Below, one piece after another: positions 1-22,001 of a DNA stretch of 64,000 nucleotides. The translations under genes were made by a program, and so were the position numbers. The notes under the pieces were generated by a model that ran no database searches, had not been told where the DNA came from, and worked only from the letters and a program-made list of their open reading frames with translations. Each line of letters starts with the position of its first letter. The stretch's first letter is position 1. Source of the stretch: Macrostomum hystrix (Eukaryota > Animalia > Platyhelminthes); assembly GCA_950097015.1 (NCBI GenBank), contig CATNEN010000001.1, positions 20,956,001 through 21,020,000 of the forward strand. The letters run 5' to 3'.

Positions 1-75
1 TCTAATGGTGCAGCCGAGCGAGCCGTCCAGACTATTAAGAAGGCCTTGCAGGCATGGACCCAGCGTCTAACACAT
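1..75 (+). pseudogene. Gypsy-type integrase core fragment, interrupted by the CACTA insertion at 76
   Basis: Frame 1 reads SNGAAERAVQTIKKALQAWTQRLTH (integrase SNGxAER motif). It rejoins in frame to GSFVSFLQKVLLHHRN...TPAELVLGRRLR at 12203 once the AT duplication is removed. Confidence 0.85.
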
Positions 76-440
76 CCCGCCTGGATAGCCGATCCGGTTG
101 TCGTCCGGCCGTCGTCCGCATTGGTCCGCGTTTGGTGGTCGATTCCGGACAAATGCACCTTTTCGTCCGGTATTCATCCGGTTTAAGCTGCCGGACAAAG
201 TAGCGGGCCAGTTTCCGGATCAGAGCCGGACAAAGTGGTGATTTTTTTACTCAATTGGTCCAGTTTAGTCCGGAATTATATCCGCTTGTTTACCCGGACA
301 AAAACCGGATGAAGCGTCGGATGACTTTACGGATGACTAGCCGGATGAATTGTCACTGTCGTCCGGAAAGTCATCCGTATTTTAATCCGGGCTGTCGCCC
401 GCCTAACAACCGGACGAAGAGCGGACATGTTTCCGGGTGA
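76..440. repeat. Left subterminal TCCGG/CCGGA repeat field of element 1
   Basis: Dense direct and inverted TCCGG motifs, as expected for CACTA subterminal repeats; mirrored at 11840-12200. Confidence 0.75.
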
Positions 441-445
441 TAGTG

Positions 446-1365
446 GATATATATATACACAGAAGACTCACGGTCTTCTTCCTTCACACACAGGCAGGCA
501 TATATACACAGAAGACTCACCGTCTTCTTCCTTCACACACAGGCAGGCATATATACACAGAAGACTCACCATCTTCTTCCTTCACACACAGGCATATATA
601 TATATACACAGAAGACTCACGGTCTTCTTCCTTCACACACAGGCAGGCATATATACACAGAAGACTCACGGTCTTCTTCCTTCACACGCAGGCAGGCATA
701 TATATACACAGAAGACTCACGGTCTTCTTCCTTCACACACAGGCAGGCATATATATACACAGAAGACTCACGGTCTTTTTCCCTCACACACAGGCAGGCA
801 TATATATACACAGAAGACTCACGGTCTTCTTCCTTCACACACAGGCAGGCATATATACACAGAAGACTCACCGTCTTCTTCCTTCACACACAGGCAGGCA
901 TATATACACAGAAGACTCACGGTCTTTTTCCCTCACACACAGGCAGGCATATATATACACAGAAGACTCACGGTCTTCTTCCTTCACACACAGGCAGGCA
1001 TATATACACAGAAGACTCACCGTCTTCTTCCTTCACACACAGGCAGGCATATATACACAGAAGACTCACGGTCTTCTTCCTTCACACACAGGCAGGCATA
1101 TATATACACAGAAGACTCACGGTCTTTTTCCCTCACACACAGGCAGGTATATATATACACAGAAGACTCACGGTCTTCTTCCTTCACACACAGGCAGGCA
1201 TATATACACAGAAGACTCACCGTCTTCTTCCTTCACACACAGGCAGGCATATATATACACAGAAAACTCACGGTCTTTTTACCTCACACACAGGCAGGCA
1301 TATATAAACAGAAGACTCAAGGTCTTCTTCCTTCACACACAGGCACATATATACACAGAAGACAC
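446..1365. repeat. 49/51-bp tandem satellite, ~18 copies
   Basis: Unit GTCTTCTTCCTTCACACACAGGCAGGCATATATACACAGAAGACTCACG with a variable (TA)n tract. Confidence 0.95.
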
Positions 1366-1557
1366 AAGCAGCCATTGTTGACTTGCAGAATGTGTGAGTT
1401 GCAGAATTAACAAATAAAAAATGATGTCAGCAGAACAAATGCTATGTGTTTTATCGTTTATCAAATGCTAAGTTTTGTTGCACATAAACTATTTAAAAAT
1501 ATGATAATGAGCAGGCTAGTTTGAACACAATGATTACAAAAGTTAGTCCATGCTCCG

Positions 1558-2711
1558 TGTAATAAAATGAATGTCCTAGCTGGAGCGAGAGGAATTTAAA
1601 GCTAGCGACTATTCACTATTCACCGGGGTCGGTGTCCTACCAATCGTTTCAATAGCAGCAGGGAATCTGAAATTAAATAGCGTTAGAGTACTAGGGTAGC
1701 AAGCGAAGCGGAATAGGAAATGTCGTCCTCCGGCCCGGCGAAACTCCCAATGAAAAAAGGAATAACACAGTGTGAACACAAGACTCGAATAATTTGATTA
1801 GAAGTGATTTGATCAGCTGTGACTAAGATTACAGATACGAATAGGAATTACTTTGAATATCGTTTACTTGACTTAAAAGTTATACTGACAGAATAGATGT
1901 TCGCACAGAAATAAATTATAGCGCGCTCACAGTGAGAAGCAAGTCTGGCCTAACAATTTGGATATAACAATTTTACCTAACTGGCCTAATCCGCGCCCTA
2001 CTCTTCCCGAGAGGCTCCGGTTGTCTCTGCTTTCAGCGCTGCCCCGACAAATCCTATCGGTTGGCACTCCTTCTGCCGGACGGCGGAGTCTCCGAAGAGA
2101 GCACGTACTGACTTCGACAACCAGCGCCTATCTAGACCACCCTTGTCAGCGGCGCACTCTCAAGACGCGTAGCGCCGAAAGCTACCTAACTGAACAAGCG
2201 GAGCGTGGTCGGGCGGGGAAGGACAAAACAAGTGGACTAAATTTGCTGGCGCGTGCTTCTCACAGTGTGAGGCGAATTGCCGATAGCGATAATTTGCACG
2301 TGCTTCTCACAGTGTGAGGCGGATTGCAGAAAAAGATAATTTTGGACTACAAAAACACGCTTCGTTATATAGAGTCATTTCGACCCCAAACTAGGTCGAT
2401 CGGCGAGGTGGATGCCTGGCTGTAGCTTGAGCCGAGGTGACAAATCACAGTAGACTTGCGACCGCCGTTCTGAGCCCCGGGGTTGCTTCTTGCCGAGGGT
2501 AGACAGGTAGTGAGGCCAGGTCGCTCGCTGATTGGCCGGGACCGTAGCCCAGGGGTAGCGCTCGCGGGGTGGTGGGCGTCCGTTCCCCCAGCTGGTCCGG
2601 CCCGGCTTGGCGTGGGTGACTCTTAGCAAAAAACACACGCGTCTAAAAATAGATAATTAAGCACTGAAAAATAACACGGGGAGATAGAAGTACAAACAAG
2701 CTGACACTACA
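1558..2711. mobile_element. Probable solo LTR (1154 bp)
   Basis: TGTAAT...ACTACA ends, flanked by 5-bp direct repeat CTCCG (1553-1557, 2712-2716); no convincing ORF. Confidence 0.55.
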
Positions 2712-2831
2712 CTCCGCATAAAAATAAACTAACCACAACTGCAGCCGCTTTTGCAGATCACACTGAAAAGTGGTATAATGATTTAGCTCGTAGTATGCAC
2801 AGCGAGATACAGCTTTAACCATTCAAAGGCT

Positions 2832-3313
2832 TCATGTGATTGGAAGGCAGTGTGATGTTAAGTCTTTGATTTGTAGACCCTGATAAAGCTGATAAAGTTT
2901 GAAGGTCTGGAACTGCTGTTGCTGCAGTTGCTGATTCTGCTGCAGTTGAACTTGTTGCTTGGTCGTCAATCCAAATAGTCCGATCGGCGCCGGTTGTGGC
3001 AGCAAAGGTTGCCTTGCAGAGGCCGCGGGCCTTGGCAGCACAGGAGCGCTAAGACGCTTTCCTAATGCAGGATTGCCGGTTGCGGCAGCAGGCTGCCATT
3101 TTTTATAGGCGCCGCATCCGCCACCGTATCGATACCCTTTCCTTTTGCGGTGCTTACTGGATTTCTTCGAAGACGGCGGCTTCTCTTTGCGCATCATGGC
3201 AACGATGTTTTGGCCAGCCGGCTTCACAAGAGAGCGCACGCACTGCATTGTTCCGTTCGGGTGCAGCAAGAAAATTTTCAGGGGGGGGAATTCCCCCCGC
3301 TTTGGTAGTTCTA
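2832..3313 (-). CDS. Unknown cargo exon (K/R-rich, then P- and Q-rich) inside element 1
   Basis: 145-aa ORF extends in frame upstream (ELPKRGEFPPLKIF) to a CTAATTAACAG branch/acceptor at about 3314-3324 on the minus strand. Confidence 0.4.
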
Positions 3314-4599
3314 CTGTTAATTAGCTATCTGGCATGTAAAAGTGGCAATAACAGAAAAATTTGCAACTGAAATCGAGGCTGATCAATGCAAGTATTCATC
3401 AGAACTATACAGACAATAGTAACTGACGCAAAGCGTGAAAAAGATAGTGACAGTTTAAAAAATGAATAAAATCATTAGCAAAAGTATCCCGATTTGCTGC
3501 AGAGTCGGTGATTCCATATATGGCAACGTGTATATATGTGCCTGTGTGTGATGGACCCGACAGAAGACAACAGAACACATATATACGCATGGCACCAATC
3601 AAGCTTTGAGAAATATTGCAAGACTTGATGGCCGTCCACGGCTAATGGGCACAGTGGCAGATTATGAAGTCTGCCAGAATTTGAAAATCCAAGCAACTGG
3701 GCAAAGCTGTGAATGAATGCATGCGAGACGAAGCAACTATTGATTGAGTGCATGCCCAAGAGTAATATAGTAATAGTAATATAATCCAGAGATGCAACTG
3801 ATTTGATTTATCGCTGTAATACATATAGAAATGTAAAGATATGTATGGGACGATATATAAAAGACATAAATATATATAAAGATACACGTACAGATATGAA
3901 GATAAAAAGTCATACACAGATATAATTTATACTAGCCGAGAAAGGCCATTCTCTAAGCATGACTTAAGTACCTCCTTGCTCTTAGACACAAGCAGCCATT
4001 GTTGACTAGTTCTAAGCGCCGAATTGCCATATACCAGCAGGCGCGCTCCAGACCAGAGTTGACAGCTAGCAGTTTGTCGATGAACCCAAGACTGCGGCCG
4101 CACACGCTAATAAGTTTGAGCAAGTCGACACTGAAACGACTATGGTCACGGGTGAGCTTGCTTGCCGGAGCCAATCAAGCTGAAAGCACGCACACAAGTT
4201 CACACAGACATTCTTCTTCTGTGTATATAGATGCCTGTGTGTGAAGGAAGAAAACCTTTGAGGCTGAGATCTTAAAGAGGGTACATTGAGACATATCAGA
4301 GACTGCTATGTCTCATCGATGTTGTTCGATGCCTTCGCATCTTTTGCATGTGTGCAACACATTAGATAGTACAGTATGTTAGATAGGGATCATAGAGGTC
4401 TTCGAAACAGCGGGTATTGTTCGACAAAATTGGTCTCGTCCGAGTTGTTACTGCAATGCAGAAATGCAGAAACATGTCGTCCATTCTATACGTGGATAGA
4501 TGAATAGGTCACACAGCACATAGTGCTATAGTGAATATGCGCATCTAGACATCATAAACCAACCCAATCTCTTTCAGTACTGCACGACTCGCAAACTGT

Positions 4600-7424
4600 A
4601 TGGACAATTCAGATTTACCGCCGCGGTTACAGCGGAGGCAGTACATGCGAGAGTACATGCGGCAGCGTGCGTTGGCCAATTCAATTAGTCGACAAGACGG
4701 TTCGCGATCACCTCTGCGTCCAACCGCAGGAACTTCTGCAGATGTCGACTCCGGCGAAGTCCAGTCCGGCGGCGCAGGCACCAGTGGGACTGCTGCAGTC
4801 GTCGCAGCTGCAAGCGGATCCGCCTCTACACCTACAGTATCTCGATCTCGAGATGAGCAGTCTGTATACCTGCCTATAGACAATCCAGAGTCCGACGACG
4901 GTGGCGCACAGGCCGATGGCCGCAATGGGGACCCGGTGTCGAGCTCTGACAGCACTTCGGACGGGGATTCTTCCTCTAGTGGTGAGTCCCAGTCAGAGAG
5001 TTGGCTTATCGCGGATTGTGGATCCGTCCCAATGGCTCATGTTTGATACTTTTGCGTTACCTGCACGTTGCACTCACACTGTCCACCGAACACATGCGCA
5101 CTACGCACACCACACACAATATATTCCTCCCAGGTTCGCAGTCTGATGACGGCCAGAGCACAGACTCCGACAACGACGAGGACGTCCCGGGGTTTCCAGG
5201 AGTGAATTGGCACGACGCTCTGGCCGTTTCGCTCGGAGAGGCGATTTGTGAGGTCAGCTCCTGCGCGAGGGAACTGAACCTGACAGTTAGCGGGACGACA
5301 AGGCTGCTTTCACTACTGCACAGGCTAGTACCCGACAACCGCCTTCCTCAGCACGGACGAACATTGCGTGAATCTTTGAAGAAGAGGGGAACAATCTCGG
5401 GGTCGTCAACATGTTACACTGTCTGCAACGACTGTTATCTACATTCCGAGCAGCGCTGCGATCCAGGAAACGCTAATTGTGCGCACTGTACGTCGGAAAA
5501 TGTGGCCAACTTCTGGTTATTCGACATACCTGCGCAGATCCGAACATTCGTTGAATCTCGCGGTGTTCTACAGAGCGTAACATTTCCGATTGAACGGCTT
5601 GCACTGGACGAAGAGAATCTGCACTTTGCCAAAAGCAAACTGTACAAGTCGTTTCTCGAGAACATCGAACCCGAGACTCGGAGCGACCTTACATACACCA
5701 TCTGTGCAGACGGATTTCCTCTTTTCTGCACTAGCAATGTCGAGGTGTGCCCCGTCTATCTGAGTATTAACGAAGTGCACGAGCGGCTGAAGCTCCGATT
5801 CGTGATGAAGTGTGGCGTGTGGGCCGGCAAGAAAAAGGTCCATGCCGCCGCCTTTCTGCCAATCGTCGTAAATGCACTGAATACTCTGCGCTTCGATGGT
5901 GTACAGTATATCGACAGCCTCGGGGTTCAGCGTCGATTGCATCTGCATCCGCTAATGGCGCTGTTCGACGCTCCAGCGAGAGCGGACGCTCTGTGCATGA
6001 AGCGTTTCTCGGCTATCTACGGATGCGAGAAGTGCTACATCCGGACATCATTGCATCCATCAGGCCATGGACGAGTCTACGGCGTCGGGGTTACTGACGC
6101 GATGCTTAATCAGGCCAGACGTCTAGGATGCGTTCAGACTGTAGTGCGGTCGACCAGCGACACTCACACTCTCGCTGAGCAGCACGCACAGCAGGGTGGC
6201 GACATTCGGACTGACGTCCTCGGTGTCCGTGGCCTGTCACCGCTGTCTCGACTGCACGGGTTTGACTTTGTCTGCGGCTGTCCACCGTGTTTCCTGCACC
6301 AGTTGTGCTCCGGCCTGGTACGCAATATTTTGCTCCAGCTGTTCCTCGTGCGTCATGAAAAACCGGATCGAGGCGCCACAAATTGTCCGGACCTGCACGC
6401 GCGGCTGAGCCACATCGACCAGCGTCTTCGGCGCATTCGCGTTCCTCGCACTGTTCAGCGTCACACTGTCAGGCTTCTCAAGGACATCAGACACATGCGC
6501 GGCCACGAATACGCAATGTGGTTGTTGGCGTTCGCGCCTTTCGTCCTTGATGACTTCCTGCCAGAGGAACACTACTGGCACATTTTAATCCTCTCCACGT
6601 GCATCTTCTGGATGTCCTTAGAAGGTGCGCCGCGTGCCGAATTGCGCCACGTTGAAATCGGGCTGAGACACTTTCACGCGAACTTGTCGCGCCTTTATTC
6701 GCTGCGATTTCTGTCATACAACGCCCATCAAGTCTGCTGCCACATGCTGCCGTATGCCATACTGGCAGGTCCTCTGAACCGTCAATCCGCCGGGCTGTTT
6801 GAATCGATGCATACCAGACTGCGTCGCCAGATTCACGGGTCCCGCCGCACGGATGTGGAGATTGTCGGAGCCGTTGAGCGCGAGCTGGCGGTCATGCAGG
6901 CTGAGGAGCTTCTCCGCGACAACGACCAGCAGACACGCGCGCGGCACAGAACGACATGCATGCGCGCGGCGTCTGGCATTCTACTACGGCGTCCTAACAA
7001 CATGGCCCATGGCTGGCGTTCGGCGTCTCTCCCGTCAGGGTTGTATTTCGAGGAGTATCTACCGGAGATTGAGACGCGGGCGTCATCTGCCTTTGTAGCC
7101 ATTGCCGGAAGCCAGCCGACGAGCTTTCAGTTCGGCCGCGTTCTAGCAATCGAGTGCGACAACGATGAGGTGTATGTCAACCTTCACATCCTACCCGTAC
7201 AGGACGCTGTCGTGGACCCACTGGAGGCCTTGTGTGCCGTACATGCCAACTCGGAGAACCGAGGTGCCAGATTTGCGCACATCCGAGGCCTCTTAGTCAA
7301 TCCATTCGGTCCGTTACCACATGAGCGCACCGTTCGAGTTCACGCCACCGCCATCGTTGGGTCGTGCGTCGTTTCGGACACAAAAATATGCGTTATGCCA
7401 CACCCGCAGATCGGCTTCCAGTAG
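4600..7424 (+). CDS. CMC/EnSpm-type DDE transposase, 2 exons (4600-4981, 5134-7424)
   Basis: CxxC zinc motifs; ADGFPLF (D1); FDAPARA...YGCEKC (D2 plus C2C); YNAHQVCCH; SAGLFES (E). Phase-1 intron G|GTGAGT...CCCAG|GT joins the 4600 and 5001 ORFs in frame. Confidence 0.88.
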
Positions 7425-7492
7425 CTTATTATTCAGGATCGTATTAATTAGCTGTTGCTTCTGTTTAATCATCACCGCATCAATAGTACGAG

Positions 7493-7566
7493 TATAAGTA
7501 TAAGTATCGTATAAGTATAAGTATCGTATAAGTATAAGTATAAGTATAAGGCTCGTATAAGTATAA
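7493..7566. repeat. (TAAGTA)n microsatellite
   Basis: Direct reading of the sequence. Confidence 0.85.
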
Positions 7567-8130
7567 TATCAATGGAATTGAAAATATCGGTCCCTGAAAG
7601 TAGTGTAAAATTCTCATTTCAAGCACATAATTCCCTCTATAATATTGTGGCGACAGTCGCTTTTTTTGCATGTCGGACGATTTTGTTTCATCGATGATTC
7701 TTGTGTCGCGCTCTCAACTCTTTAGCTAATTTAGAGGCAAATTTGGAATATGTTTCCTCTCAGCTTGTAATCCCCCAATACTCGGGTATATAATTGAAGA
7801 CGTCAGCTGCACTGAAATTGTTCCACTAATTTCATTATCATAAAAAATATTTCGTTTCGCAAACATTACACATGAGGCAGTATATAATTTCATGATCACT
7901 TTAATTATTATTGATACTGCACGACTGTTGCAGTACTATTTCATACCTTACCGGTTTCCATATTACTGCATGTTTGGTTTACTTACGTATGTGTATAACT
8001 GATTAGTTAGAAATACAATTGCATTTCCCGCTGCACTGTAACTATGTATACGTTTTTCCTCTTTTCTGCAGCCCTCGTGTACATGCACTAAAGGGTTGCA
8101 AACGGTTGTTCAAGTAATTGCTTAGCACGT

Positions 8131-8547
8131 ATGAGTACAAAGGGTTCCACCGCCTTACACTGCAGCTACATGTCCCGGCGCACGGGTCAATTTTCCGGGA
8201 CTCCAGACTGGTCCTTGATTTTGGACGGACTTATCGGCGAAGGGGTTGATGAGCTACTAGGAGATTCCGTAGATTCGGAGGTCGAGTCGGACGACACACA
8301 TACTACTCTAGGCTCACCCGCCGCCCAGGTAGATTCGGATGTACGGGTCGAGTCGGACGACACACATACTACTCTAGGCTCACCGGTCGCCCATGTCCAG
8401 CAGTTGGACAGTCAGGCCTGGGACGAAGATGCAGTTGCGCAGGAGGAGATCCAGGAATTAGTCCTGTCGCCCTCAGAGCTCCGCCGTCCGACGCCAGTCG
8501 CTAGCAGTACGCAAGTTGACGCAAGTACGCAATCAGTACGCTGCTGA
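8131..8547 (+). CDS. Acidic low-complexity ORF; possible N-terminal part of the CtIP-like cargo (one frame offset from it)
   Basis: Internal duplication gives VESDDTHTTLGSP twice; STQ motifs; overlaps the 8516 ORF in the next frame. Confidence 0.4.
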   Translation: MSTKGSTALHCSYMSRRTGQFSGTPDWSLILDGLIGEGVDELLGDSVDSEVESDDTHTTLGSPAAQVDSDVRVESDDTHTTLGSPVAHVQQLDSQAWDEDAVAQEEIQELVLSPSELRRPTPVASSTQVDASTQSVRC

Positions 8548-8788
8548 CTACAATAGGCTTCCGGACGAGCCGCCGCCTACGTTCGACTCACGCCGGCGGT
8601 ATGACAGGCAGCGCCTTCCTGCGCAAACTTGCCCAGACTGTGAAGCCTGGTACGCCAACCTGCCCGCCGAAGTTCGCGACCAGCGCCTGCAGCGCCATGG
8701 GCGCCATCGGCATCGTCCGATTATCCAGGCGCCAAACTTTTTTCCATCGACATGCCCCCCAGTCCGCCACCACTTCCGGTGGAGCTGA
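8516..8788 (+). CDS. CtIP/Sae2/Ctp1 C-terminal (SAE2)-like domain
   Basis: RRRYDRQRLPAQTCPDCEAWYANLPAEVRDQRLQRHGRHRHR...NFFPST aligns colinearly with the recalled CtIP sequence [42 protein letters not shown]...NFWEVGFPST (CxxC and RHR motifs). Confidence 0.75.
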   Translation: MTQVRNQYAADYNRLPDEPPPTFDSRRRYDRQRLPAQTCPDCEAWYANLPAEVRDQRLQRHGRHRHRPIIQAPNFFPSTCPPVRHHFRWS

Positions 8789-9434
8789 TGAGAGTAGGCA
8801 GGCGCCGTATGCGGCCCCTTCGCGGCCTTGCTCCCTATGATGCGCCGAAACCTAAGTCTGCAAAGAAGGATTGAATTGCTTTGGTAATTTAATTTCCCCA
8901 CCATGGTCGCGCCATGGTCGCCCCATGGGGACTAGTTGAAATAGGGATGGGGATAGGGATAGGATAGGGATAGGGATAGAAATATTTCCCCACATGTGGG
9001 TACAGGTGAAATCGTTTTTTAGAAGAACTGCTGCGCAACTCTTGTTCATATGCTGTTTCATCCTTCCACACTTTTTCTACATGTGTTGACGATTTCTGTT
9101 TTAGTTAAATTTTTAGTTTTTAGTTTTTGTTTAAACTTTTTGGTAATGCTATGCGGGTTGCTTGCTGAAGTGCAATGGCGTCGAGGTTGCTGAAGTGCAA
9201 ACACATATAATTATATGTGCTATAAAACGACCGGCGCTTTTTTGGCTTTGTGATATCCGTCAGTCTTGTTTGTTATTTCATTCCGTCCCGCTGCTAACTC
9301 CTTACGAACCCGTTGTACATAACCAAGTACTCAGTCACCTATAGTGCTCGAGGATCAGAGACGATGACTCCTGTACAGGTCTCGCGGAAATGCCAACCTC
9401 ACCTCATTTTCCAGCGTGCACGAGAACTGCCATC

Positions 9435-9608
9435 ATGGGCCGCACGTGTCGCGACGCTTCGGATAAAGAAAGACGTAAAGAGGCAAAAGAAACACATGCA
9501 ACAATAAAGAAAATAGTTTCTAAGAAAATAGTATCAGTACCATCCAGTGTCGCCAAGGTGTCGGCTCGGGCTACGGAAACCGATTCGGGTGCCAACGTCC
9601 CGACTGGA

Positions 9609-9646
<38 letters not shown>

Positions 9647-11368
9647 AGCTGTGGCAGATGCGGGTTTAAATCCGCCAGGTGGATTAGGCGTCGCTAATCC
9701 GACTGCCATCGATAGAGAATCCGAAGAAGTTCCGATTCCGCGGCATCGACTCGCCGCTGAAGGAGATAGCGAAGCTGAAATGGTGCCGTTTAATGCCGAA
9801 GCCAAGGCCCGGTTTTTTGTATTTCAGTATACCGACTTCCATCAGCGAACAAAGGTAGTGTCAACAGACGCCTGCTTGATGTCCACCAGTGCCATCATTT
9901 CGCGTCGGTCGGATGTGCAGCTGCCTCTAAACACCGGCGCCGTAGTCGCTGTCGTGACAGCTCGGAGCAAGCGTAGCACGGCCCGGCGCTATCTGGGCAC
10001 ACTAATAAAGGGCCCATTCGACAAGAAAAGCGAGGCTGCTGGTGCTGCCAGCTTGACTAACGTCCACGCGGCACCCGCCGAGCTGCCGCGGTCCTGCAGC
10101 TCCTGTCGCGGTCTCATGCTTGAGCTCCAAAGGGAGAAGGCCTTGACCGAATCCCTGCGTAAGTTTCTGATTAAGTTACTCATGGGGCCGTCAGATCGAT
10201 CTGCATTGTCGTATTCTGCATGCATCTAGATTCATCAACTGACGCATTCCGTCCACATATATAAGCAGAAGCAAACCATAAGTTAGCTGATTGACCTGTC
10301 AATCCTTCCAATTCAAATACATACGCAGGTGGCGAACTTAAGCTCCTCCGTACTTCTGAGACCAACCTGCTGGCACAGAACCACACGCTCCTGCACAAGA
10401 CGAGTGTGCAGGCCAAAATGGAGCGGAAGCTGGTCATGCAGGTCGAGCAGGCCGAAGCGCGCAACAATGGCCTACTGCGTAATGTCGAGACCGCCAACGC
10501 GCTGCTCGCCAGGGCGTCAAATTGCCTTTTGTCGGCCGCAAGTGCAACCACTTCAGGTGCTGCTGCAGCTGCATCACATGTGCGCCCCGATGATACCTTT
10601 GGTGACGCTGTTTCTAGCGCGCACTCCTCTGCCGACGAGTCTGCTGACGATGACGCATTTGGCGACCAGGCAACCTTCTCCGCTGATCGCAACCTGTCTG
10701 TTGCCGAAACGCGCGCGTTAATCCGCGCATGTGACGCGGAGCAAGGGACCGCCACTAGCTCTGCTACCGGCGGACTGGTCGCCCTTTCCGACAGCCAGAA
10801 GTTTTTTCATGTTCCTTTGCGACTCCGGTCTGAACTTGAAGACCGACACAAAGAATATAAGAAGGCGATGGAAGATCAGCAGGCGGTCGACCTAGACGCA
10901 GTTGCCATGCGGCACTTTACGCGCTTGGCGCTACTGCGTGCTGTCTTTAGGGCTGTCTTTACGTCGCAAGAATTGGCGAACTCATCCCTGTCAGGCCGAA
11001 GATTTGCTGGGTACGTTTCGGCGCCGGCGAACCCGGCCAAAGTTGCTGTCGCGAGGCAGTGGCTGCAGAACGCCGAGGTGCCAATTTACCGCAACGAACT
11101 GCATCGCGCATTCACTCGGTGCGGCGAGACGGCGAGATTGCAGCTGGGACTGCCGAAGCGCAGCCGACCCAAGCGTTCGACTGCGGCCCGCACACCTGGC
11201 CAGTCATCTCGCTCGAAGGCTACCACCTCTGCAGAACATGTTCTGCGCATAATTACCGAACAGACTGAGGAGTCTCATAACACTGGGACGCAGTTTAATC
11301 TCAACGCAGGCGACTTGGACGGCGACAGTCGTCCAAGTGACTTGTTGCTGGAGATGCTGAACGATTGA
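9435..11368 (+). CDS. Transposon accessory protein with coiled coil and BEN-like domain, 2 exons (9435-10158, 10329-11368)
   Basis: Phase-1 intron C|GTAAGT...CGCAG|GT joins the 9390 and 10406 ORFs in frame. LLRAVFRAVFTSQELANSSLSG matches the BEN domain signature. Poly-Ala is encoded by (GCC)n. Confidence 0.7.
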
Positions 11369-12200
11369 TGATTGTGGCCATTTGAGGATATTGGAGCAGG
11401 GTGGTTCTGGCCATTTGAGGATAGGGGTAAGGGGATTGTGGCCAGTGTGACTTTATGCACCAACTTTTTGTATTTCGTGATTTGAGAGGTGATTGTAGTC
11501 AGTGTGACTTTTTGCACCTACTATATTAGCATTTTGTGAGATGTGTCGAGTCGATGATGTGATGATGCTGAATGTTCGTAAAATACAAAGTAATTCTTGC
11601 CGGTTTAAGCCCCTGCTTTGGGTGTTCGTGCAGCATTACTACAAGCAGCTTCAGCTGTGCCACTTGGAAACAAAAAATGTTACTGGAAACCAGTCGTGAA
11701 TATGTCTTTGTAAAGCTTCTTTTCTATTTAAAACATCTCAACACAAATGTCTTTGGATTTCGCGTCTGCATTTAAAGGCCTCGCCATGAATTAAAGTCAG
11801 CGTGACTTTCATCAGTGTACTAAGTATGTACTTCCGCTTTCCATCCGGATGTTCTCCCGGATTTTCGTCCGGATCACGTGAATCTCTCTTTGCCCGGTTT
11901 TCGTCCGCTTTTTGATCCGGGTAGTCATCCGGTTTACGCGTCTGATGCAGTCGTCCGGTTTTGTCCGGAAAATAACCCGCCATGTGGTCCGGTTAGTTCT
12001 GGATGAAATTCCGAACAAGTTTTCGGATGACAGTCCGTATTTCAACCGGACCAATCGGCGTTTTTCCAGACATTTTGGTCCGATTTTAAACTTTTGCTCC
12101 GGTTTTTTTCGGACGAATCAAATGGGAAAAATACATTACAACCCCGGATGACACCCGGACGTGTATACGGACAAACTGCCGGACCACTTATCCAGGCGGG

Positions 12201-12616
12201 ATGGCAGCTTTGTCTCTTTTTTGCAGAAGGTTCTGCTACATCATCGCAATTCTTCAACTTCACGCGGACGAACACCTGCCGAGCTCGTGCTAGGACGGCG
12301 ACTTCGAATTCCGGTGGTCTCCACCTTCCAGCAGGGCGACCCGGTGCAGTTCAAGGCCAACGGCGACACCACCAGCTGTCGAGCTGAGTTCCTGATGTCG
12401 CAGGGGCGCAACACCTCCTGGCTACTGACGGGCGCCAAACTACAACTGGCCTCAAACAATCAATTCGGCCCGCTGGCTCCTGCCTCTGAGACCGATGAGG
12501 AAGAAGAGGCAGTTCACCAAAAACCACAAGCTAATATGCCTGAGGTTCCCCCAGAGATCGCTCCGACAAGAAGAAGCACTAGGGTGAGGAATCCCCCAAA
12601 TCGCTTTGTGCCGTAG
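12201..12616 (+). pseudogene. Gypsy-type integrase C-terminal part
   Basis: TPAELVLGRRLR, FQQGDPV, and terminal RRSTRVRNPPNRF, typical of Gypsy integrase tails; followed by a purine tract at about 12728-12738. Confidence 0.85.
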
Positions 12617-14019
12617 GCTCAGACTGAGTAAATCATGATCGCGTCATTTCACTGACTTTGCGAAGTCTACTAACTAGTTATTAAAGTTTGTTTGTTTGAC
12701 TGGACGTTATCCATCGTCTCCCTTTGCAGATGGGGACATGTGGTAGTGGCTGCTAGCTAGAGCTAGCGTTGTTGCACCTTTACCCAATCTTATCCTTGTG
12801 ATATCTACCCGCCTGGACATTTGGTCCGGAGTTTATCCGCCCTTTGTCCGGATTGGTCCGGATTTGGGGTATTTTCCGGATAAAAGTTGGATCTAGCAGG
12901 TTTTCGTCCGGATTTCATCCGGTTGGCACTTACGGACGAAAGTCCGGAGAAAATTCCGGACGAAATCCGGAAGAAGACGTGCTATTCTGGTAAATTTTGT
13001 GTCACTTTCATCCGGTCGATTCTCCGGACTATATCCAGATGAAACAGGATCAATTTCCGGAAATATCCGGACAAACTGTGTGTTCATCCGTATTTTGATC
13101 CGGTTTTTGTTCCGCCGCTTCTTCCGGCAAATTTCCGGACGAAAGCCGGCAGTTTTTCCGGATAAATGCAGTTCAAATGTGTAATAATGTATGATACCTT
13201 TACTTGAATGTACAGTACTGTTTGTGTGCTTTAGTGTTTTTTGAAGAAAAATATATGGTCCAAGAAAAATAGCAGCTTGTTTCCGTGTTCAATACTTCTT
13301 TCGCTTGCCTCTGCCGGTTCATTTGGGCCTGATATAGGAACATAGAGCTGCGTAGAATAGAAATAGAAAATAGAAATATAAAGGAAATAGAAAATGGCAT
13401 GAGACATCGTCGTAGATGAAATGATATAGTCAGCACATTGCAACAATAGAACAATGCAGAAATGGCAAAGATTTTTAATATATAATTGAATATATATATA
13501 TTGAATAACACCCATGAATATGAATATGAAAAGTACAGTCTTGATTGTCGTACATGTCTTCTATCTTAATGAAGTCTATATCAAAAAATTCCTTTTCATT
13601 TGCTTTGCCGTACCATAGTCAATCGTATCCATTCGGCGACAATGGACAACGGTGACGACGACGATGCCGCTATGAACCGCCGCATTTACATGCGACGGTA
13701 CATGAAGAAGCGCAGGGCGGTAGCTAACGCGTCAGGCCTGGACACCAGACCACGGTCTCCATCACCTACAGGTCATATCAACGCCGCGCCTGACACTTTT
13801 GCAAGTAGCCCTGCCATATGTGCGAGTCGCGCTGCCACCTTTGCAAGTGGCGCTGCCACTGACGATGCTGCTCCGACTGGCGCTGCCGCTGGTCCAAGTT
13901 GTCCTGGTGGCGAACCCGAAGCATATTCGGTTGCAGATAGTAGCGACGATGAGTCGGATGATCAGTCTGACGTTAGTGGTGAGTGACCGACATAATGAGC
14001 TAAACATTATTTCTGTTTA

Positions 14020-14500
14020 GCTTCTTCCTTCACACACAGGCAGGCATATATACACAGAAGACTCAAGGTCTTCTTCCTTCAAACACAGGCAGGCATATAT
14101 ACACAGAAGACTCAAGGTCTTCTTCCTTCAAACACAGGCAGGCATATATATACACAGAAGACTCAAGGTCTTCTTCCTTCACACACAAGGCAGGCATATA
14201 TATACACAGAAGACTCAAGGTCTTCTTCCTTCAAACACAGGCAGGCATATATATACACAGAAGACTCAAGGTCTTCTTCCTTCAAACACAGGCAGGCATA
14301 TATATACACAGAGGACTCAAGGTCTTCTTCCTTCACACACAGGCAGGCATATATACGCAGAAGACTCAAGGTCTTCTTCCTTCAAACACAGGCAGGCATA
14401 TATATACACAGAGGACTCAAGGTCTTCTTCCTTCACACACAGGCAGGCATATATACGCAGAAGACTCAAGGTCTTCTTCCTTCACACACAGGCATATATA
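14020..14500. repeat. 49/51-bp satellite, ~9-10 copies, same family as 446-1365
   Basis: Unit ...AGAAGACTCAAGGTCTTCTTCCTTCA(C/A)ACACAGGCAGGCATATA...; lies in the transposase intron. Confidence 0.95.
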
Positions 14501-14708
14501 TATATAGTAGATGACTTGCTTGCCGCAGCCAATAAAGCTGAAAGCACGCACACAAGATCACACAGAAATTCTTCTTCTGTGTACATAGACGCCTGTGTGT
14601 GAAGGAAGAAGACCTTTGAGGCTGAGATCTTAAAGAGGGTACATTGAGACATATCAGAGACTGCATATGTATACGTCTTCTTCCTTCACACACTTCCTTC
14701 GCAGTCCT

Positions 14709-15360
14709 GCAATCACGCATGGCACCAATCAAGCTTTGATAAATATTCCAAGACTTGATGGCCAATAATGGCACATCACGTCAACTTCTACCACTCGCTC
14801 ACTCATGCAATCACGCATGGCACCAAGCAAGATTTGATAAATATTCCAAGACTTGATGGCCAATAATGGCACGTCACGGATCAACTTCTACCACTCGCTC
14901 ACTCATGCAATCACGCATGGCACCAAGCAAGATTTGATAAATATTCCAAGACTTGATGGCCAATAATGGCACGTCACGGATCAACTTCTACCACTCGCTC
15001 ACTCATGCAATCACGCATGGCACCAAGCAAGATTTGATAAATATTGCAAGACTTGATGGCCAATAATGGCACGTCACGGATCAACTTCTACCACTCGCTC
15101 ACTCATGCAATCACGCATGGCACCAAGCAAGATTTGATAAATATTGCAAGACTTGATGGCCAATAATGGCACGTCACGGATCAACTTCTACCACTCGCTC
15201 ACTCATGCAATCACGCATGGCACCAAGCAAGATTTGATAAATATTGCAAGACTTGATGGCCAATAATGGCACGTCACGGATCAACTTCTACCACTCGCTC
15301 ACTCATGCAATCACGCATGGCACCAAGCAAGATTTGATTAATATTGCAAGACTTGATGGC
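14709..15360. repeat. 100-bp tandem repeat, ~6.5 copies
   Basis: GCAATCACGCATGGCACC recurs at 14807, 14907, 15007, 15107, 15207 and 15307. Confidence 0.95.
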
Positions 15361-18300
15361 TCAAGTCTCAAGACTCGAGGTCTTCTTCCTTCACACACAG
15401 GCAGGCATATATAGTAGATGGCTTCCTTGCCGCAGCCAATAAAGCTGAAAGCACGCACACAAGATCACACAGAAATTCTTCTTCTGTATATATAGACGCC
15501 TGTGTGTGAAGGAAGAAGACCTTTGAGGCTAAGATCTTAAAGAGGGTACATTGAGACATCCGAGTATCAGAGACTGCAGACATGAATGAATTTTTTGCAC
15601 CAATAGTGGACAGCAATATTGCACTTGCAGCCATTGTTGACTAGTTCTAAGCGCTGAATTGCCATATACCAGCAGGCGCGCTCTAGACCAGAGTTGACAG
15701 CTAGCAGTTTGTCGATGAGGCCAAGACTGCGGCCGCACGCCGCACATGCAAACCTTACATGTACGTACTCATTCCATGCGCTTTACACTTAATGACGCTT
15801 AAATATGTCTCTTACGAATTGCATTAAATTCCCAGACGATCAATCGTCCTTCGGAGAAGCAACCGATCACCCAGACGACGGTGATGACGATCCGGTGCCC
15901 AGAACAATCATGGCAGTTGACTGGCACGATGCTTTGCCAGTGACACTCGGAGAAGCCATTAGTGAGGTCAGTTCCTGTGCCCGGGACTTGAATGTCTCAC
16001 TGGGCGGCCTGACAAGGATCCTCGCTCTGCTTCACAAACTGGTGCCAGGGAATCGTCTTCCTAAGCACGGAAAAACTCTCCGATCGCAACTGGCGGCAGT
16101 GGGAACTATCTCGAAAACATCTAAGTCTCACACAGTCTGCAGCAACTGCTTTATGAGCACGCCAGTCCCATGTAACCCAATCAATGCCACTTGTGGGCAT
16201 TGTGGGTCAACAGAAGTCGCCAACTTCTGGTTGTTCGACATTCCAGCTCAGGTGCGGACAGTTTTGGAGTCTCGCAAGTTTCTAGACAACGTTGTGTGGC
16301 CGGCGGACCTTGTCATGGACGAAGAGAAACGTTTTTTACCAACAGCGAGCTCTATTCGTCTTTCCTAGAGAACATAGATGCAACAACTCGCAGCGATCTG
16401 TCCTACACTTTGTGCGAAGACGGATTTGCTCTATGCAGCACGAGCGGAGTCGAAGTGTGTCCGGTCTATTTGAGCGTTAACGAGGTGCATGACCGATTGA
16501 AACTGCGCTTCGTGTTCAAGTGCGGCGTTTGGGCCGGCAAGAAGAAGGTGAGCGCTTGCGCATTTCTGCCCATTGTGGTCGGTGCGCTCAACGACCTTCG
16601 CTTCAATGGTGTAGAGTATTTGTCGCGGGATGGTGAGCAGCGGACCCTGCGGTTACATCCTCTGATGGCCATTTTCGACGCACCTGCCAGAGCAGATGCC
16701 CTCTGTTTGAAGCGCTTTTCCGCAATCTACGGATGTGAGAAGTGCTACATCCGGACAGCACTGCATCCTTCCGGCTATGGTCGCGTCTACGGCGTTTCCA
16801 TAACCGATGCCATGCTGAATGAAGCACGACGTCATGGATGCGTACAGACGGTCGTTCGTTGTGCAACCGACACGCGCTCACTAGCGGATCGACACGCCCA
16901 GCAGGGCGGAGACTTCAAAACTGACATTCTAGGCGTTCGGGGTTTGTCGCCACTCTCTGGCCTGTATGGCTTTGATTTTATGCGAGGCTGTCCGCCCTGC
17001 TATCTTCATCAGCTCTGCTCTGGTTTAGTTCGGAGTTTGCTTTTCCAGTTCTTCTTGCCCCGTCACGAGAAGCCGGACCGCGCCGACACCAATTGTCCTG
17101 ACCTGAGCGGGCGGATCAGCAACATCGATCAGCTTCTGCGGAGTGTTCGTCTGCCGCGCAGTGTTCAACGCCATACTGTCCGGTCCATCAAGGACATCAG
17201 GCACCTGCGTGGTCATGAAGCAGAGATGTGGCTAATGGTTTTTGGACCATTTGTGCTCGACGAGTTTCTTGGTGACGAGCACTATTGGCACTTCCTGATC
17301 CTGTCGGCAAGTGTCTTCTGGATGTCGATGGACGGCGCGCCGAAATCCGAGCTGCGACATGTAGAGGTTTCACTGAGACACTTTCATGCAAACCTGTCGC
17401 GTTTGTACTCTCTGCGGAAGCTGTCCTATAACTCGCATCAGGTGTGCTGTCACATGCTGACCTACGCAATTCTCGGTGGTCCTTTGCATCGGCAGTCTGC
17501 GGGTCTATTTGAGTCAATGCACACCAGGCTGCGGCAATAAATTCACGGCTCTCGCCGCACAGACGTTGAACTCGTAGGGGCCGTTGAGCGGGAGTTAGCA
17601 ATCATGCAAGCGGAGTACACGTTGCAGGACAATGCGGAACATCTGGAAGCACGTGCAGGACGAAAGACAGTCTGCTTGCGCACTGCTTCAAAAATTGTTC
17701 TCCGGCGCCCAACGTCTATGGCTCAGGGCTGGCGCTCGGCGTTACTCATCTCTGGACTTTATGTAGAGGTGTTTGCTCCGGACGATGAGGACGCAGATTT
17801 CCACAGAAGTACATCTGCCTTCGTTGCCATTCGTGGGAGTGATTCCACGAACTTCCGATTTTGTCGTGTCGAAGCCATACAGCACAACAACGCAGTGGTG
17901 ACCGTTAGACTGCGAGTCCTGCCTGTTCTGGAGCCAGAAATGGATCCTCTAGAGTTGTTGTGTGCTGTTCCGACCACATCTGAGAACCGGGGTTGTCGGT
18001 ACTCGCATGTCCGTCGCCTCCTGGTGGATCCATTCGGCGACCTTAGCAGTGAACCCGCCTGGACGGTGCGCACCGCGGAAATTCTTGGCTCGTGTGTAGT
18101 TTCAACCGACAGAATTGCCCTGATGCCGCATCCACAACTTGGCTTTGCTTAGACACTGCTTTGAAAAATTACTACAACTTTCTCTTTCTCCTGTGCTTTT
18201 CAACGTTAGCATTGGGGGTGGGGGGAAGCCGCGGGGGGCAGGGGTGGGCAGCGTACACAAACGCCAGTTAGCGTAGCCTGCGCAAACTAGTCACAGTTTC

Positions 18301-18441
18301 TTTAGGTATAGCAAGCAGTAGCATTATAGCATTAATTCATAAGTCTGTTCAGTATACATGCCTAGGTAGCATAAGTCTGTTAATTGTTAATTGATTAGTT
18401 CAGCACCAATAATTAGTTTCCACTGCGTAGCTCCGCAAGCA

Positions 18442-18969
18442 ATGTCAAATAACCGCATGCTCAATCCTCGATGGCTCTCCAAGTCGCCAGAGAATATCGA
18501 AGAAGTGAGAGAACTGCTAAGTCATGCTGTCCCTTACCAGCCCCGGCCGCCCACACCATTCCAACTGGAGTGCAAGCAACAGTGCGCTGACATGCAGGAC
18601 GCAATGAGGCGAGAGGGGCAGTTTTTTCGCGACTTGGCTTCGCGTCCACCAGTCAGCGACTCAACAGTGGCTGGTGGGCCTTGGTTATCGAAAGCCATGA
18701 AACCGAACATAAACAGAGGGTTCCCCCTGTTTCCGGCTGGTCAGCCGACTTCGCCTCCTGAGCCGACGGCAACTCAGGAATGAAATCCTCCTTTTAAGCC
18801 GGCTGACGGTGAGGTTGCGGATGGGGAGCAGGAGTCCGCGGTGAAGGCCGAGTTGCGAGACAAATGCGCAGCAGCGCTGATGCGGGCGGAGATGGCCCTC
18901 AGGGAAGCAGACCAATACCTGAAGGAATTGTACGAGCACAGCCGCCCGCCATCGCCCGTGTTCGAATAG
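18442..18969 (+). pseudogene. Unknown cargo ORF of element 2 (~175 codons, one internal TGA at 18781)
   Basis: The frame continues past the stop as NPPFKPADGE...ELRDKCAAALMRAEMALREADQYLKELYEHSRPPSPVFE. Confidence 0.45.
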
Positions 18970-20334
18970 ATTAAGCTGGAATTAATTCACAGAAGACATA
19001 ATAGGCTACCGCGGTAATAGGCTACCGCTACTACATAATAGGGTGCAGTTGAGCGCCAGAATTCAGTTGGCTGGGTGCAGTTGAGCGATGGTTAGATTGC
19101 ATGAGCATTTCCTTGTTTGTGGACCAAGAATCGTTAGTTTGGTTGTTTCTAAAATAACTCTAGACTGGTGGTATTTAGTGTTCGACTCGCGACTCCCCGG
19201 GGGCCGCACCTAGGGGCCGCACCTAGAGTACGCGGGCCCGTGCTGGCCTGCGTCAGGGCGCGAGTGTCCGCACGGGACCCTAAGTCTGGGGCGTCAGGAC
19301 GCACCCAAGTGGCCGGCACACGCGTAGGGACGCTGTGATGTCGATCACCTTCAGCAGGGCGTCGGGACGCACGAGCTGGCGTCTAAGTACAGCGGGTGTA
19401 CAGTACAGGGTGACCCTTGGCTGACTACCTGGTCTAGTCCCCCCTCCTTAGTCGGCGTCAGGACACACGGACGGTCCCAGCTACAGCCCACCCGAAATGA
19501 AGGAGACAAGGCAGTGACTTACTTCACTTATCACTCGCGCGGGCAGTCAATTTCGTGCAGCTGACTTCTGTCTGTGGCTGGCTGACCGGTTGGTTAGTGT
19601 TTATTGTTTTGCTCGTGGGGGAGGGGTTATTGAAACGGTAGTCAGGCGTTGTGGAGCGAGAACACGCGCGGGGCAGCCACCCCACTACCCCAGCCCAGCT
19701 ACCCACCGGCCAATCACGGCGCAGCTGGGGGAGGAGCAGTCTGGGGTGAGGGCCACACAGGGCAGCCCAGCCAACCAGCGCTTGTTCTGCTTCCCTATAA
19801 TTTTTTTCTCAAGAAAAAAATTTTTTTTTCTTAGCTACTAAATTTCCATTATAAGTTGCAACTTTAACAACGAATTTTCACTGTTATATGGCCACGACTG
19901 GATAAAATACTTAAATAAACTACTTAAATAAAGCTACTTAGAAGGAGCTTACCGCGATTGTTGTGTGTCGTGTAGCTTTTTGTCGGAATGTTTGGGTTAT
20001 TTCTGGAAATAATTTCTACAAAAGCTTTTCGCACTTGATAACTTTTCTTTACGAAACCACGAAATTTCTAGTTAACCATTGTTTCTTTATAAAGAAACTA
20101 GCTTTTTTTGCCCGTTGTTTTTGGGGCAGAAATTTAAAGCAAAGCAGTAAGCAATTCACGTCTCTGTATTAACTTTATAGTGAAGGTCAACATTTATTTA
20201 TTTACTGCATTAATGAAAAGTGAAGAGTTTGTTTAAGGGCGTTTTAAGTAAAAAATAAGTGAAAAGTTTGTCCAAACAGCCCCCTCTTGATTACTTCTGT
20301 AGAAACATGTCTCTTAGCCACTCCTCTATACAGT

Positions 20335-20583
20335 CAGTGGCAGATCCAGGAATTTTGTTTTGGGGCGGTCTGTCAGGGGAGCGCCATGAGAATCACAGAG
20401 GGGGTGCCAGCGGCCGAAAAAGGGCACCAGGAGCCAAGAAAGGGCGCCAGCGGCTGAAAAACGGGAGCCAGCGGCTGAAAAAGGGGCGCCAGCGGCCGAA
20501 AAGCGATGGTGGGGGCATCTTATTCCCATGATTAAAATTTAGGGGGGGCGACTGCCCCCCCGCCCCCCCTAAATCTGCCTCTG
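20335..20583. mobile_element. hAT-type MITE
   Basis: Imperfect TIRs CAGTGGCAGATCCAGG and CCTAAATCTGCCTCTG; 8-bp TSD TATACAGT (20327-20334, 20584-20591). Confidence 0.85.
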
Positions 20584-21359
20584 TATACAGTATGCATGTA
20601 CACGCGTACGCGTATTCATAAGGAAAATAGCCATGGCATAACAATAACAATGTCAAAGAAACAAAATTAAACTGTTTCAGAGTTCAGAGTTAGACAGGTC
20701 AAGGTCAATTCGTGACTACTTTTCTATTTTATTGCTTGCGAGTGCAATAGGCTACTCAAATTCCCGAAAAATCATTTCCTTCCTGCTCAAAAGTGCAAAA
20801 AACTGCTCAAAAATCGTCAAAAAATCACTCAATTCGACATATCGTCGCCCCACTTTGTCAGATTTTCTCCAAATTTGATCCACTTACACTTTACATGTTT
20901 TCCAACAATGCTATCAATTTTGAACATCTCTACTCAATCCAGAGCAAAGCTGCATCATCTCAAAGTGAGTCACTTTTTGTTTTCCGAGGACAGCCACCCC
21001 AACTCCCCTCCGCCACTCTGCGGGCCAAATTTTATTACAGCCACCCCCTCCCTTCCCCGGGCGCCGAAGCCCCAGACTGTACATTGTATTTCAAGCCGTG
21101 AATGTACACAGCCCAAACCCCTAGACTGTCTACTGGCCCCCAAGCAGCACTGAGACTGAGTGCGGTGATTGCGGTGGCGTCCCAGTGCGCAGGGCTCTCC
21201 GGTCGATATTACTCTCCAGCCAGCCTGGGATAGAAGAAAGAGAGAGGCTGGCGTACAGTGCTTTGCTAAAATATACAGAGGCTTAGCCTCTCCCACTGAA
21301 GAGAAGAGAAAGATTTTTTAACACAGGTCCCCTGTCTTTCGGACTACTTCTAACTTTCT

Positions 21360-21836
21360 TTGGAGTATCCTGTTGAGTTTCTGAACTCTCTAGATCCTCC
21401 TGGAACTCCATCGCACAACTTGCAGCTGAAAGTTGGGGCACCAATTATGCTCCTCCGCAACCTGAATGCGCCAAGGCTGTGTAACGGCACCAGACTGATA
21501 GTCAGGCGGCTCTTCCCACACGTGATTGAGGCCACGATAATGACTGGATCTGGCAGAGGAGAGTCTGTGTTCGTTCCCCGGATTCCAATTATCCCCACGG
21601 ACCTGCCATTTCAGTTCAAGCGACTGCAGTTCCCTGTGAGAGTGTGCTTTGCGATGACTATTAACAAGGCTCAGGGACAGTCGCTGAAGGTGGCTGGCAT
21701 CAACCTGGAGACTCCTTGCTTCTCGCATGGGCAGCTTTATGTCGCCTGCTCCCGTGTTGGAACTCTAGCTGGCCTATTCATTTTCGCACCAAGGGGAAGA
21801 ACGAAGAATGTGGTGTATCCCCAGGCCTTGAGGTGA
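21360..21836 (+). pseudogene. Helitron PIF1-type helicase C-terminal fragment
   Basis: YPVEFLNSL...[13 protein letters not shown]...LCNGTRL...[19 protein letters not shown]...[13 protein letters not shown]...TKNVVY. Confidence 0.9.
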
Positions 21837-21953
21837 TAGGTATGTGCAAAGTTTGGTGCGATTTGGTTGAGCGGTTTCGGCGTCTATAAAGACAAAAGGT
21901 TGCACACAGACAGACAGACAAACAGACAGAGTTTTCACTTTTATATATATAGA
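21837..21953 (-). mobile_element. Helitron-like 5' terminus
   Basis: Minus strand reads A|TCTATATATATAAAAGTGAAAACTCTGTCTG(TCTG)n...ACCAAACTTTGCAC, resembling invertebrate Helitron 5' ends. Confidence 0.55.
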
Positions 21954-22001
21954 TAAAATGTATACATGCAAACTTTCAGCAAGCGAACTTTCGAACATTA
22001 A

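Follow-up and report, generated by a model that had tools for sequence, protein, structure and literature searches.

What is the C-terminal domain of a DNA-repair factor doing inside a transposon, and does it work there? The question is raised by a 64,000-nucleotide stretch of the genome of the flatworm Macrostomum hystrix (assembly GCA_950097015.1, contig CATNEN010000001.1, positions 20,956,001 to 21,020,000 of the forward strand), which we refer to as the window and in which features lie on the forward strand unless stated otherwise. A cut-and-paste transposon in the window, element 1, carries downstream of its transposase gene a segment resembling the C-terminal domain of CtIP/RBBP8, Ctp1 and Sae2, hereafter the CtIP-tail gene. 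The best explanation in our view, with a probability of about 0.5, is that this segment is a decayed copy of a selected gene of CMC-like transposons, whose protein would engage the Mre11-Rad50-Nbs1 (MRN) complex and promote the opening and resection of DNA ends.

The segment was originally described as an open reading frame (ORF) of 90 amino acids at 8516-8788, and its reading, CPDCEAWYANLPAEVRDQRL...GRHRHR, agrees with what the preliminary description had quoted. This ORF is part of a single gene at 8131-8874 that is interrupted by two frame slips. An acidic ORF at 8131-8547, one frame over, had been reported as a separate overlapping frame; its ESDDT repeats and STQ motifs are present, but it is the N-terminal half of the same gene (8131-8518, with ESDDTHTTLGSP repeats and STQ motifs). 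In the sister copy on contig 25 (L002:991-1767), which lies in an element 93-98% identical to element 1, the acidic and CtIP-like parts form one frame of 259 amino acids, and pairwise alignment of the two copies shows that they differ in the number of acidic repeats. The same alignment places the first frame break of the window copy at 8518-8519, a private 8-bp deletion within a short tandem repeat. The core of the domain follows at 8519-8745, with a YNRLP box, CxxC at 8630-8641, GRHRHR at 8699-8716 and NFF, and ends in a one-base slip at a T-run (8738-8745) that three-frame reading and alignment show to be common to the contig 25 copy. Past this slip the neighbouring frame continues IDMPPSPPPLPVELMRVGRRRMRPLRGL...KKD to a stop at 8872-8874, and this domain tail (8746-8874, IDMPPSPPP...RRRMRPLRGL...) is present in every intact relative and resembles the tail of the host CtIP. 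A family profile searched against the genome likewise matches the window in three successive frames (8137-8535, 8453-8764 and 8731-8838). Two features that had been read as part of the CtIP pattern, FPST and a TC in place of the ATR-type TQ, are coincidences, because NFFPSTCPP is read in the wrong frame after the shared slip. The window copy is a pseudogene with two frame breaks.

Evidence for homology to CtIP comes from the relatives of this copy. The Pfam SAE2 model (PF08573, cut-off 19.8 bits) has no match in ORF 8516-8788 even at E<=1, and a word-indexed protein search with the 90-residue frame returned no homologue because the frame is too short and too diverged. A six-frame search of the organism's own genome recovered 28 matches at 43-99% identity (28-48 across searches), most of them in open frames of 150-395 amino acids, and it is through this identity that the window copy belongs to the family. 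Among the longer relatives, three loci score above the SAE2 cut-off: L012 at 23.3 bits, L023 at 20.4 bits and L010, the host gene, at 21.6 bits. A profile built from 15 copies and searched against 1.84 billion representative sequences found 237 proteins at E<=1e-3, including RBBP8 of the fish Chanos chanos (E 4e-15). Ten top matches, those ranking after one M. lignano protein and one metagenomic protein, were scanned; nine carry Pfam SAE2 over the cut-off and two of these carry CtIP_N as well. When the profile was aligned with hhalign to an alignment of nine CtIP proteins, the match covered 114 columns up to the C-terminus, with a probability of 98.8% and E 9e-17. Searches of PDB sequences with both profiles returned nothing meaningful.

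The residues conserved within the family are those of the CtIP domain. CxxC, W, RL and G-RHR are invariant in the 15 divergent copies (C214, C217, G237, H239 and R240 of the alignment, with R238 nearly so), and the YNRLP box corresponds to FDR[VL]P in other animals. Other shared features are the V-RK-x-ER stretch, the P-x-[ST]-P position, the RRRRPL tail and a spacing from the RHR motif to the FF/FW box that equals that of vertebrate CtIP. Judged by these profile alignments and motifs, the segment is a true CtIP/Sae2 C-terminal domain and more than a chance match, as the preliminary description had proposed. Two absences that it had noted also hold across the family. No copy has S/T-P at the position aligned with human T847 and yeast S267, the site of cyclin-dependent kinase (CDK) phosphorylation between RHR and the FW box, where several lineages carry an aspartate three residues ahead of the FF/FW box; the window lineage lacks two residues in this interval. 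Likewise, none of ten copies scanned matched CtIP_N (PF10482), so that no N-terminal coiled coil of the CtIP type is recognisable in them.

Presence of the segment in this copy alone would, by the preliminary description, have told against its proposal, but the family is not confined to the window. Besides a single host CtIP with several exons, the genome contains about 30 copies borne by transposons, which fall into at least five divergent lineages. The host gene was located with an M. lignano protein (P0153, 481 amino acids, with an N-terminal coiled coil), which maps to a single locus at C39:3400457-3402441 on the reverse strand (L010/L061). This locus has three or more exons, the last of which is 82% identical to P0153; for its N-terminal exons the genome has no other match. 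A search with the C-terminal tail of scallop CtIP brought up no second canonical CtIP; a six-frame genome scan with Pfam SAE2 found transposon copies only and missed the host gene, and the matches from one with CtIP_N were weak noise from coiled coils. A maximum-likelihood tree built on the domain unites the transposon copies and both Macrostomum host sequences in one clade (support 100/98), which is sister to a metagenomic small CtIP of 315 amino acids (P0004) and lies inside the animal CtIPs. The host branch is short and sits in an unresolved polytomy with the transposon lineages. From this tree, the cargo is seen to descend from the last exon of a Macrostomum-lineage host CtIP, and one capture or several are equally compatible with it. 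P0004, the closest outgroup to the Macrostomum clade, is encoded on a 1.6-kb metagenomic contig and has an N-terminal coiled coil, several TQ motifs and an SAE2 score of 37.6 bits.

The dispersal of some 30 copies in the genome could also mean that small CtIP paralogues form a multigene family of the host and only happen to lie near transposons. The genomic context makes this very improbable. In 26 of the 28 other copies a transposase C-terminus lies upstream and/or the accessory gene ORF3 downstream, and in the two exceptions the partner ORF falls just beyond the stretch examined or the copy is a small fragment, whereas the multi-exon CtIP locus, the single orthologue of the M. lignano gene, has neither neighbour within the stretches examined. 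Moreover, the gene lies inside elements bounded by inverted repeats at unrelated sites. Element 1 spans 74-12202, about 8.2 kb of it apart from a nested insertion at 448-4315 (no strand assigned) of ~50-bp-period satellite and other sequence, where the contig 25 copy has only 182 bp. Its left terminal inverted repeat at 74-87, which can be read as ATCCCGCCTGGATA or as a 2-bp AT duplication followed by CCCGCCTGGATA, is a perfect 14-bp match to the right repeat at 12189-12202 on the reverse strand, and the contig 25 copy has the same ends. Window positions 74-447 and 4316-12202 are collinear with that copy (L033+L039 9326-17515) at 93-98% identity, and the flanks of the two are unrelated on both sides. 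If the ends are taken as CCCGCC, element 1 is flanked by AT/AT both in the window and on contig 25, and element 2, a second transposon of the window that is related to it, by TA/TA, although with three insertions the AT may belong to the repeat.

Elements on C24, C39 and C1, with transposases only 36-59% identical to that of the window, repeat the order of transposase, CtIP-tail gene, ORF3 and ORF4, and in the L018-L021 lineage the BEN-like ORF precedes the CtIP-tail gene. By its boundaries and recurrence, the CtIP tail is cargo of a bounded, multi-copy cut-and-paste element. Three copies, L018, L019 and L020 (C3:7696114-7696578, C26:1365230-1365694 and C38:24314384-24314848), have identical frames of 157 amino acids with a 450-residue BEN-like ORF upstream; they look like a lineage that has been amplified recently and in which the genes are ordered differently.

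A captured exon might still be a passenger, without function for the element and decaying neutrally, as the preliminary description had also considered. Both the window copy and its sister have broken frames, the gene is missing from element 2, and sequencing runs from the same organism, of unrecorded kind, show the element as collinear contigs only. The pattern of substitution in the family, however, is not that of decay: between lineages the proportion of synonymous differences (pS) is saturated at 0.64-0.93 while the proportion of nonsynonymous differences (pN) is limited to 0.18-0.48, and for one pair, L011 and L021, pN is 0.177 and pS 0.860. Most of the listed copies, about two thirds, are open, with no stop inside the match, the CtIP motifs are invariant, and position and start context are kept across lineages with 36-59% identical transposases. 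Because synonymous change is saturated and amino-acid change limited, copies are mostly open and gene order is conserved, the family, unlike the window copy, is not decaying passively; on this comparison it is kept by purifying selection, and we consider neutral carriage quite improbable. The single fused frame that the preliminary description had thought worth seeking is found in the 259-residue sister frame and in intact copies of 150-395 amino acids, among them those at C24:5008131-5008979, C38:33672435-33673316, C1:16507970-16508845, C1:11078202-11078960 and C39:10581071-10581823.

What the intact copies encode is an array of acidic S-x-T and TQ repeats followed by the whole C-terminal domain of Sae2/CtIP. 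In the host gene, DDEGSET and SPVF each occur once in the last exon. In the transposon copies DDEGSET(Q) is amplified in tandem, up to six times (six in L011, four each in L017 and L025), and in the window lineage ESDDTHTT units stand in its place. Acidic S-x-T motifs of Ctp1 and MDC1 dock on the FHA domain of Nbs1. The motif SP[VTI]F, found at about residue 326 in a vertebrate-type sequence and in 37 of 86 long CtIP-type proteins as against one after shuffling, is kept in six transposon copies of one lineage group (L011, L021 and L022-L025); we take SPVF to be the BRCA1-BRCT-binding phospho-motif of CtIP. The lineages that bear it begin MDHWTHAAxCxxC...EEN..LRAE..RLR. Alignment of this N-terminus with the end of CtIP_N by hhalign was not significant (3.7% probability over 16 columns), and a dimer prediction for two copies of this type-A N-terminus scored 0.07, which gives no answer either way. 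The acceptor-like motif ahead of the start codon described below, the DDEGSET amplification and the retention of SPVF in one lineage group are new here.

The start context of the gene points to a route of expression. In M. lignano, 30% of genes are trans-spliced and 15% lie in operons, the 35-nt spliced leader ends in ATG, and [T/C]TNCAG is the top-enriched motif at trans-splice sites (PMC8629364). A motif of this type ends 2-23 nt ahead of the first ATG of the CtIP-tail gene in seven of nine lineages, a pattern with P ~2e-6 given the density of the motif in these loci; in the window lineage it is CTGCAG at 8066-8071, 59 nt before the ATG. Acceptor-like motifs also precede the transposase ATG and one ORF3 ATG. 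Three copies (L022, C31:3396615-3397463; L023, C24:5008131-5008979; L024, C7:13230342-13231148) have AAG where others have the start ATG and no ATG ahead of the conserved N-terminus; a TTTCAG acceptor lies 18 nt upstream in frame, so the ATG of the leader could start translation. The 3' part of the leader with its GT donor occurs in at least 20 exact copies in the M. hystrix genome. The CtIP-tail protein is thus probably made from an operon-like transposon transcript by spliced-leader trans-splicing.

The spliced-leader RNA genes with the exact M. lignano leader 3' part and GT form an array represented on C15, C17 and C42 at a spacing of ~11.6 kb, and genes for a variant leader (...ACTCTCTTTTTTGCATG|GT) make up a large array at C39:12.667-12.743 Mb with a period of ~927 bp. 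Single scattered leader copies with no following GT may be retrocopies of trans-spliced mRNAs.

How might such a protein serve a transposon? Excision of Ac/Ds in yeast leaves hairpin-capped donor ends, and no repair products are recovered without Mre11 or Sae2 (PMC3299998). Sae2, CtIP and Ctp1 are the cofactor needed for the Mre11 endonuclease, and the Sae2-like region has been modelled on the S-region of RAD50; a C-terminal peptide of Ctp1 is reported to suffice to stimulate Mre11 (bioRxiv 10.1101/2023.03.25.534200). We hypothesize that the transposon protein, translated from an operon-like transcript with a splice acceptor directly ahead of its start codon, would engage host Mre11-Rad50-Nbs1 at transposase-made breaks, with its Sae2-like domain on Rad50 and its phosphorylated S-x-T repeats possibly in contact with Nbs1. 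As the CDK site is lacking, we propose that it would act outside cell-cycle licensing. Ends capped by hairpins or blocked by transposase would, with its help, be opened or clipped and then resected; a homologous copy would serve as template to fill the donor gap, and the element would be retained. What the sequences show is a CtIP tail carried by transposons and kept by selection, which lacks the CDK site but has its motifs for DNA binding and cofactor activity intact.

The same composition could be read in the opposite sense, as the preliminary description had also allowed. A dominant-negative CtIP tail, seated on Rad50 and/or Nbs1 but not activating the complex productively, might shield excised ends or hairpins from clipping by MRN and damp resection and checkpoint signalling while the element transposes. 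It would have neither the N-terminal oligomerisation domain nor the CDK site that licenses CtIP, the complex could be titrated by its many S-x-T and TQ motifs of Nbs1 type, and the Rad50 site is one used by inhibitors such as the MIN and iDDR motifs (bioRxiv 10.1101/2023.03.25.534200). The copies nevertheless keep the full activating region, from the RHR motif through the FF/FW box to the basic tail, and since the short Ctp1 peptide is reported to stimulate on its own, the missing N-terminus does not imply inhibition. A decoy is in our view a tentative possibility. The other main rival to an activating role is an accessory protein that uses its CxxC/RHR domain only to bind and bridge DNA, for instance by tethering transposon ends or donor ends, with no part played by MRN. 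CtIP needs its tetramer for bridging, and no tetramerisation domain was detected in the copies; the BEN-like coiled-coil protein of the element would be a more obvious end-binding factor. The RHR motif is invariant in the family, and in CtIP it contributes to DNA binding and bridging (PMC11317151). We regard pure bridging as unlikely, and the activating role is favoured.

Several observations weigh against the activating interpretation. The window copy is broken and its only close relative has one of the same breaks, and hairpin formation by the transposase of element 1 is an assumption. Four runs from the same organism carry the element as collinear contigs without joints; with their RNA or DNA kind unrecorded, they speak neither for nor against expression or splicing. 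No CtIP_N or tetramerisation domain was detected in the copies examined, tetramerisation being important for CtIP function, and S/T-P is missing at the T847 position. Element 2 has no CtIP-tail gene despite a 70%-identical transposase, and the cargo is therefore dispensable for at least some relatives. The superfamily assignment of the transposase draws on ESM features and motif order only. Finally, distances among transposase C-termini and among cargo are uncorrelated (Mantel r 0.095, p 0.32), and L023 has a window-like transposase but a cargo nearest to that of L021; this suggests module exchange or recombination between elements, repeated capture or saturation. A bolder version of the activating role, in which intact members encode a working, cell-cycle-independent mini-CtIP, expressed as a trans-spliced cistron of a transposon operon, that recruits and activates the host Mre11 complex at the element's breaks, forces homologous repair of the donor site and makes cut-and-paste transposition effectively replicative, is tentative and somewhat doubtful. 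If it held, no eukaryotic transposon would have been shown before this one to supply an end-resection cofactor of its own.

Comparison with known systems shows what is shared and what differs. The likeness to CtIP/RBBP8, Ctp1 and Sae2 extends over the whole C-terminal domain of ~110 amino acids, and SPVF and the acidic S-x-T motif are shared with the host protein. In contrast to CtIP/RBBP8, the flatworm genes are transposon-borne and present in ~30 copies, hold only the part encoded by the last exon, lack CtIP_N and the T847 S/T-P, and have the acidic motif amplified in tandem. Fission-yeast Ctp1 is a small CtIP (~300 amino acids) with CK2-type SXT motifs docking on the Nbs1 FHA domain and a C-terminal CxxC/RHR. 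It resembles the transposon protein in size and layout, with acidic S-x-T motifs followed by the Sae2-like domain, but is the product of a single host gene and has an N-terminal tetramerising coiled coil, while Nbs1 binding by the transposon tail is only putative.

Among transposons, maize En/Spm produces the transposase TnpD and the accessory protein TnpA from one spliced transcription unit. The flatworm element likewise has a large DDE transposase followed by accessory genes on the same strand, with splice acceptors just before the downstream ORFs. It differs in that its ends are not CACTA, its flank duplication is probably 2 bp and one accessory gene derives from a DNA-repair factor; whereas En/Spm uses alternative cis-splicing, the flatworm element probably uses spliced-leader trans-splicing. 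Capture of host genes by DNA transposons is familiar from Pack-MULEs, gene fragments in plant CACTA elements and RPA-like genes in Helitrons. Here too a host exon has been taken into a DNA transposon, but it is a complete functional domain that purifying selection has kept in several divergent lineages rather than a decaying fragment. Transposon-encoded TnpB and IscB nucleases bias the repair of double-strand breaks toward retention of the element (PMC10055086). These offer a parallel for a second transposon gene that steers donor-site repair in favour of the element; they are, however, bacterial RNA-guided nucleases, whereas the CtIP tail is a candidate cofactor of the host's own nuclease and its effect is hypothetical. 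A literature search found no paper on CtIP/Sae2 cargo in a mobile element.

Cut-and-paste transposons rely on host break repair, and loss or recovery of the element at the donor site hinges on the choice of pathway. If the activating interpretation is correct, a transposon with a selected Mre11-activating domain would be a natural experiment in pathway choice. It would offer a minimal CtIP tail, devoid of the CDK site, that is directly testable for activity or inhibition, and a handle on how transposons manipulate resection. More generally, the pattern of an acceptor before the ATG suggests that flatworm transposons use spliced-leader trans-splicing to express several genes per transcript.

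The transposase of element 1 is a large ORF at 5001-7424 (807 amino acids) upstream of the CtIP-tail gene. Exon 1 (4600-4981) has a TTTCAG acceptor-like motif 22 nt upstream of its ATG and a GTGAG donor at 4982; exon 2 (5200-7424), of DDE type and CMC-like by its ESM Atlas neighbours and motifs, follows a TTCCAG acceptor ending at 5199. The predicted intron at 4982-5199 joins the two in frame, and a relative on C39 reads through as one ORF of 999 amino acids. Pfam gave no match at E<=1 on four transposases including that of the window, and homologue searches found just two proteins, with no Pfam labels; P0001 is a transposase 46% identical. The nearest ESM Atlas clusters are PF02992 Transposase_21 or DUF1258 (score 0.97-0.98, 224 of 256 features shared), and the motif order DGF...PVYLS...DAPA...GCxxC is invariant across six relatives and resembles that of CMC superfamily transposases. 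Membership of the CMC superfamily is only partly shown, ESM features and motif order being a lead and no proof. The preliminary description had called the element CACTA-like, which agrees with these neighbours and this motif order and does not fit the missing Pfam transposase match, the CCCGCC ends or the probable 2-bp flank duplication. Element 1 has the ends (AT)CCCGCCTGGATA and element 2 the ends (A)CCCGCCTGGACATTTGGTCCGG, neither beginning with CACTA or CAC, and a 2-bp duplication would match Mirage if the ends begin CCCGCC.

Downstream of the CtIP-tail gene lie two accessory genes. ORF3 (9390-10229) has an acceptor-like TTCCAG ending at 9414, an ATG at 9435 and no Pfam match; its counterparts at the same position are 49-53% identical in the elements of C24 and C39, and the one in C1b is 31% identical. 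ORF4 (10406-11368) encodes a coiled-coil protein with a weakly BEN-like C-terminus and is conserved in C24, C39 and C1b. Pfam BEN (PF10523) scores 13.9 and 16.5 bits in two ORF4 relatives, below the 23.2-bit cut-off, and does not match ORF4 of the window. The placement of the CtIP-like frame between transposase and BEN genes on the same strand is therefore right as to position (between 5001-7424 and 9390-10229/10406-11368), the BEN label being sub-threshold.

The right end of element 1 adjoins an ORF at 12161-12616 that reads like the C-terminal part of a retroelement integrase (window 12203-12616), and element 1 may have inserted into an older retrotransposon. The subterminal regions of both window elements (74-160, 12120-12202 and 12808-12860) are dense in short GTCCGG/GTCCGC-type motifs, which are candidate binding sites for an accessory protein. 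Element 2, at 12806-24463, has 23-bp inverted ends (ACCCGCCTGGACATTTGGTCCGG) and TA/TA flanks, and its transposase (13600-18152), ~70% identical to that of element 1, is interrupted by a satellite insertion. In the place of the CtIP-tail gene it has an unrelated ORF of 130 amino acids (18391-18783), and a helicase-like fragment is nested further on (21360-21836). The same ~50-bp-period satellite lies inside both window elements (427-1410 and 14021-14504) and also beside a third element on the same contig (L035 7165-7569).

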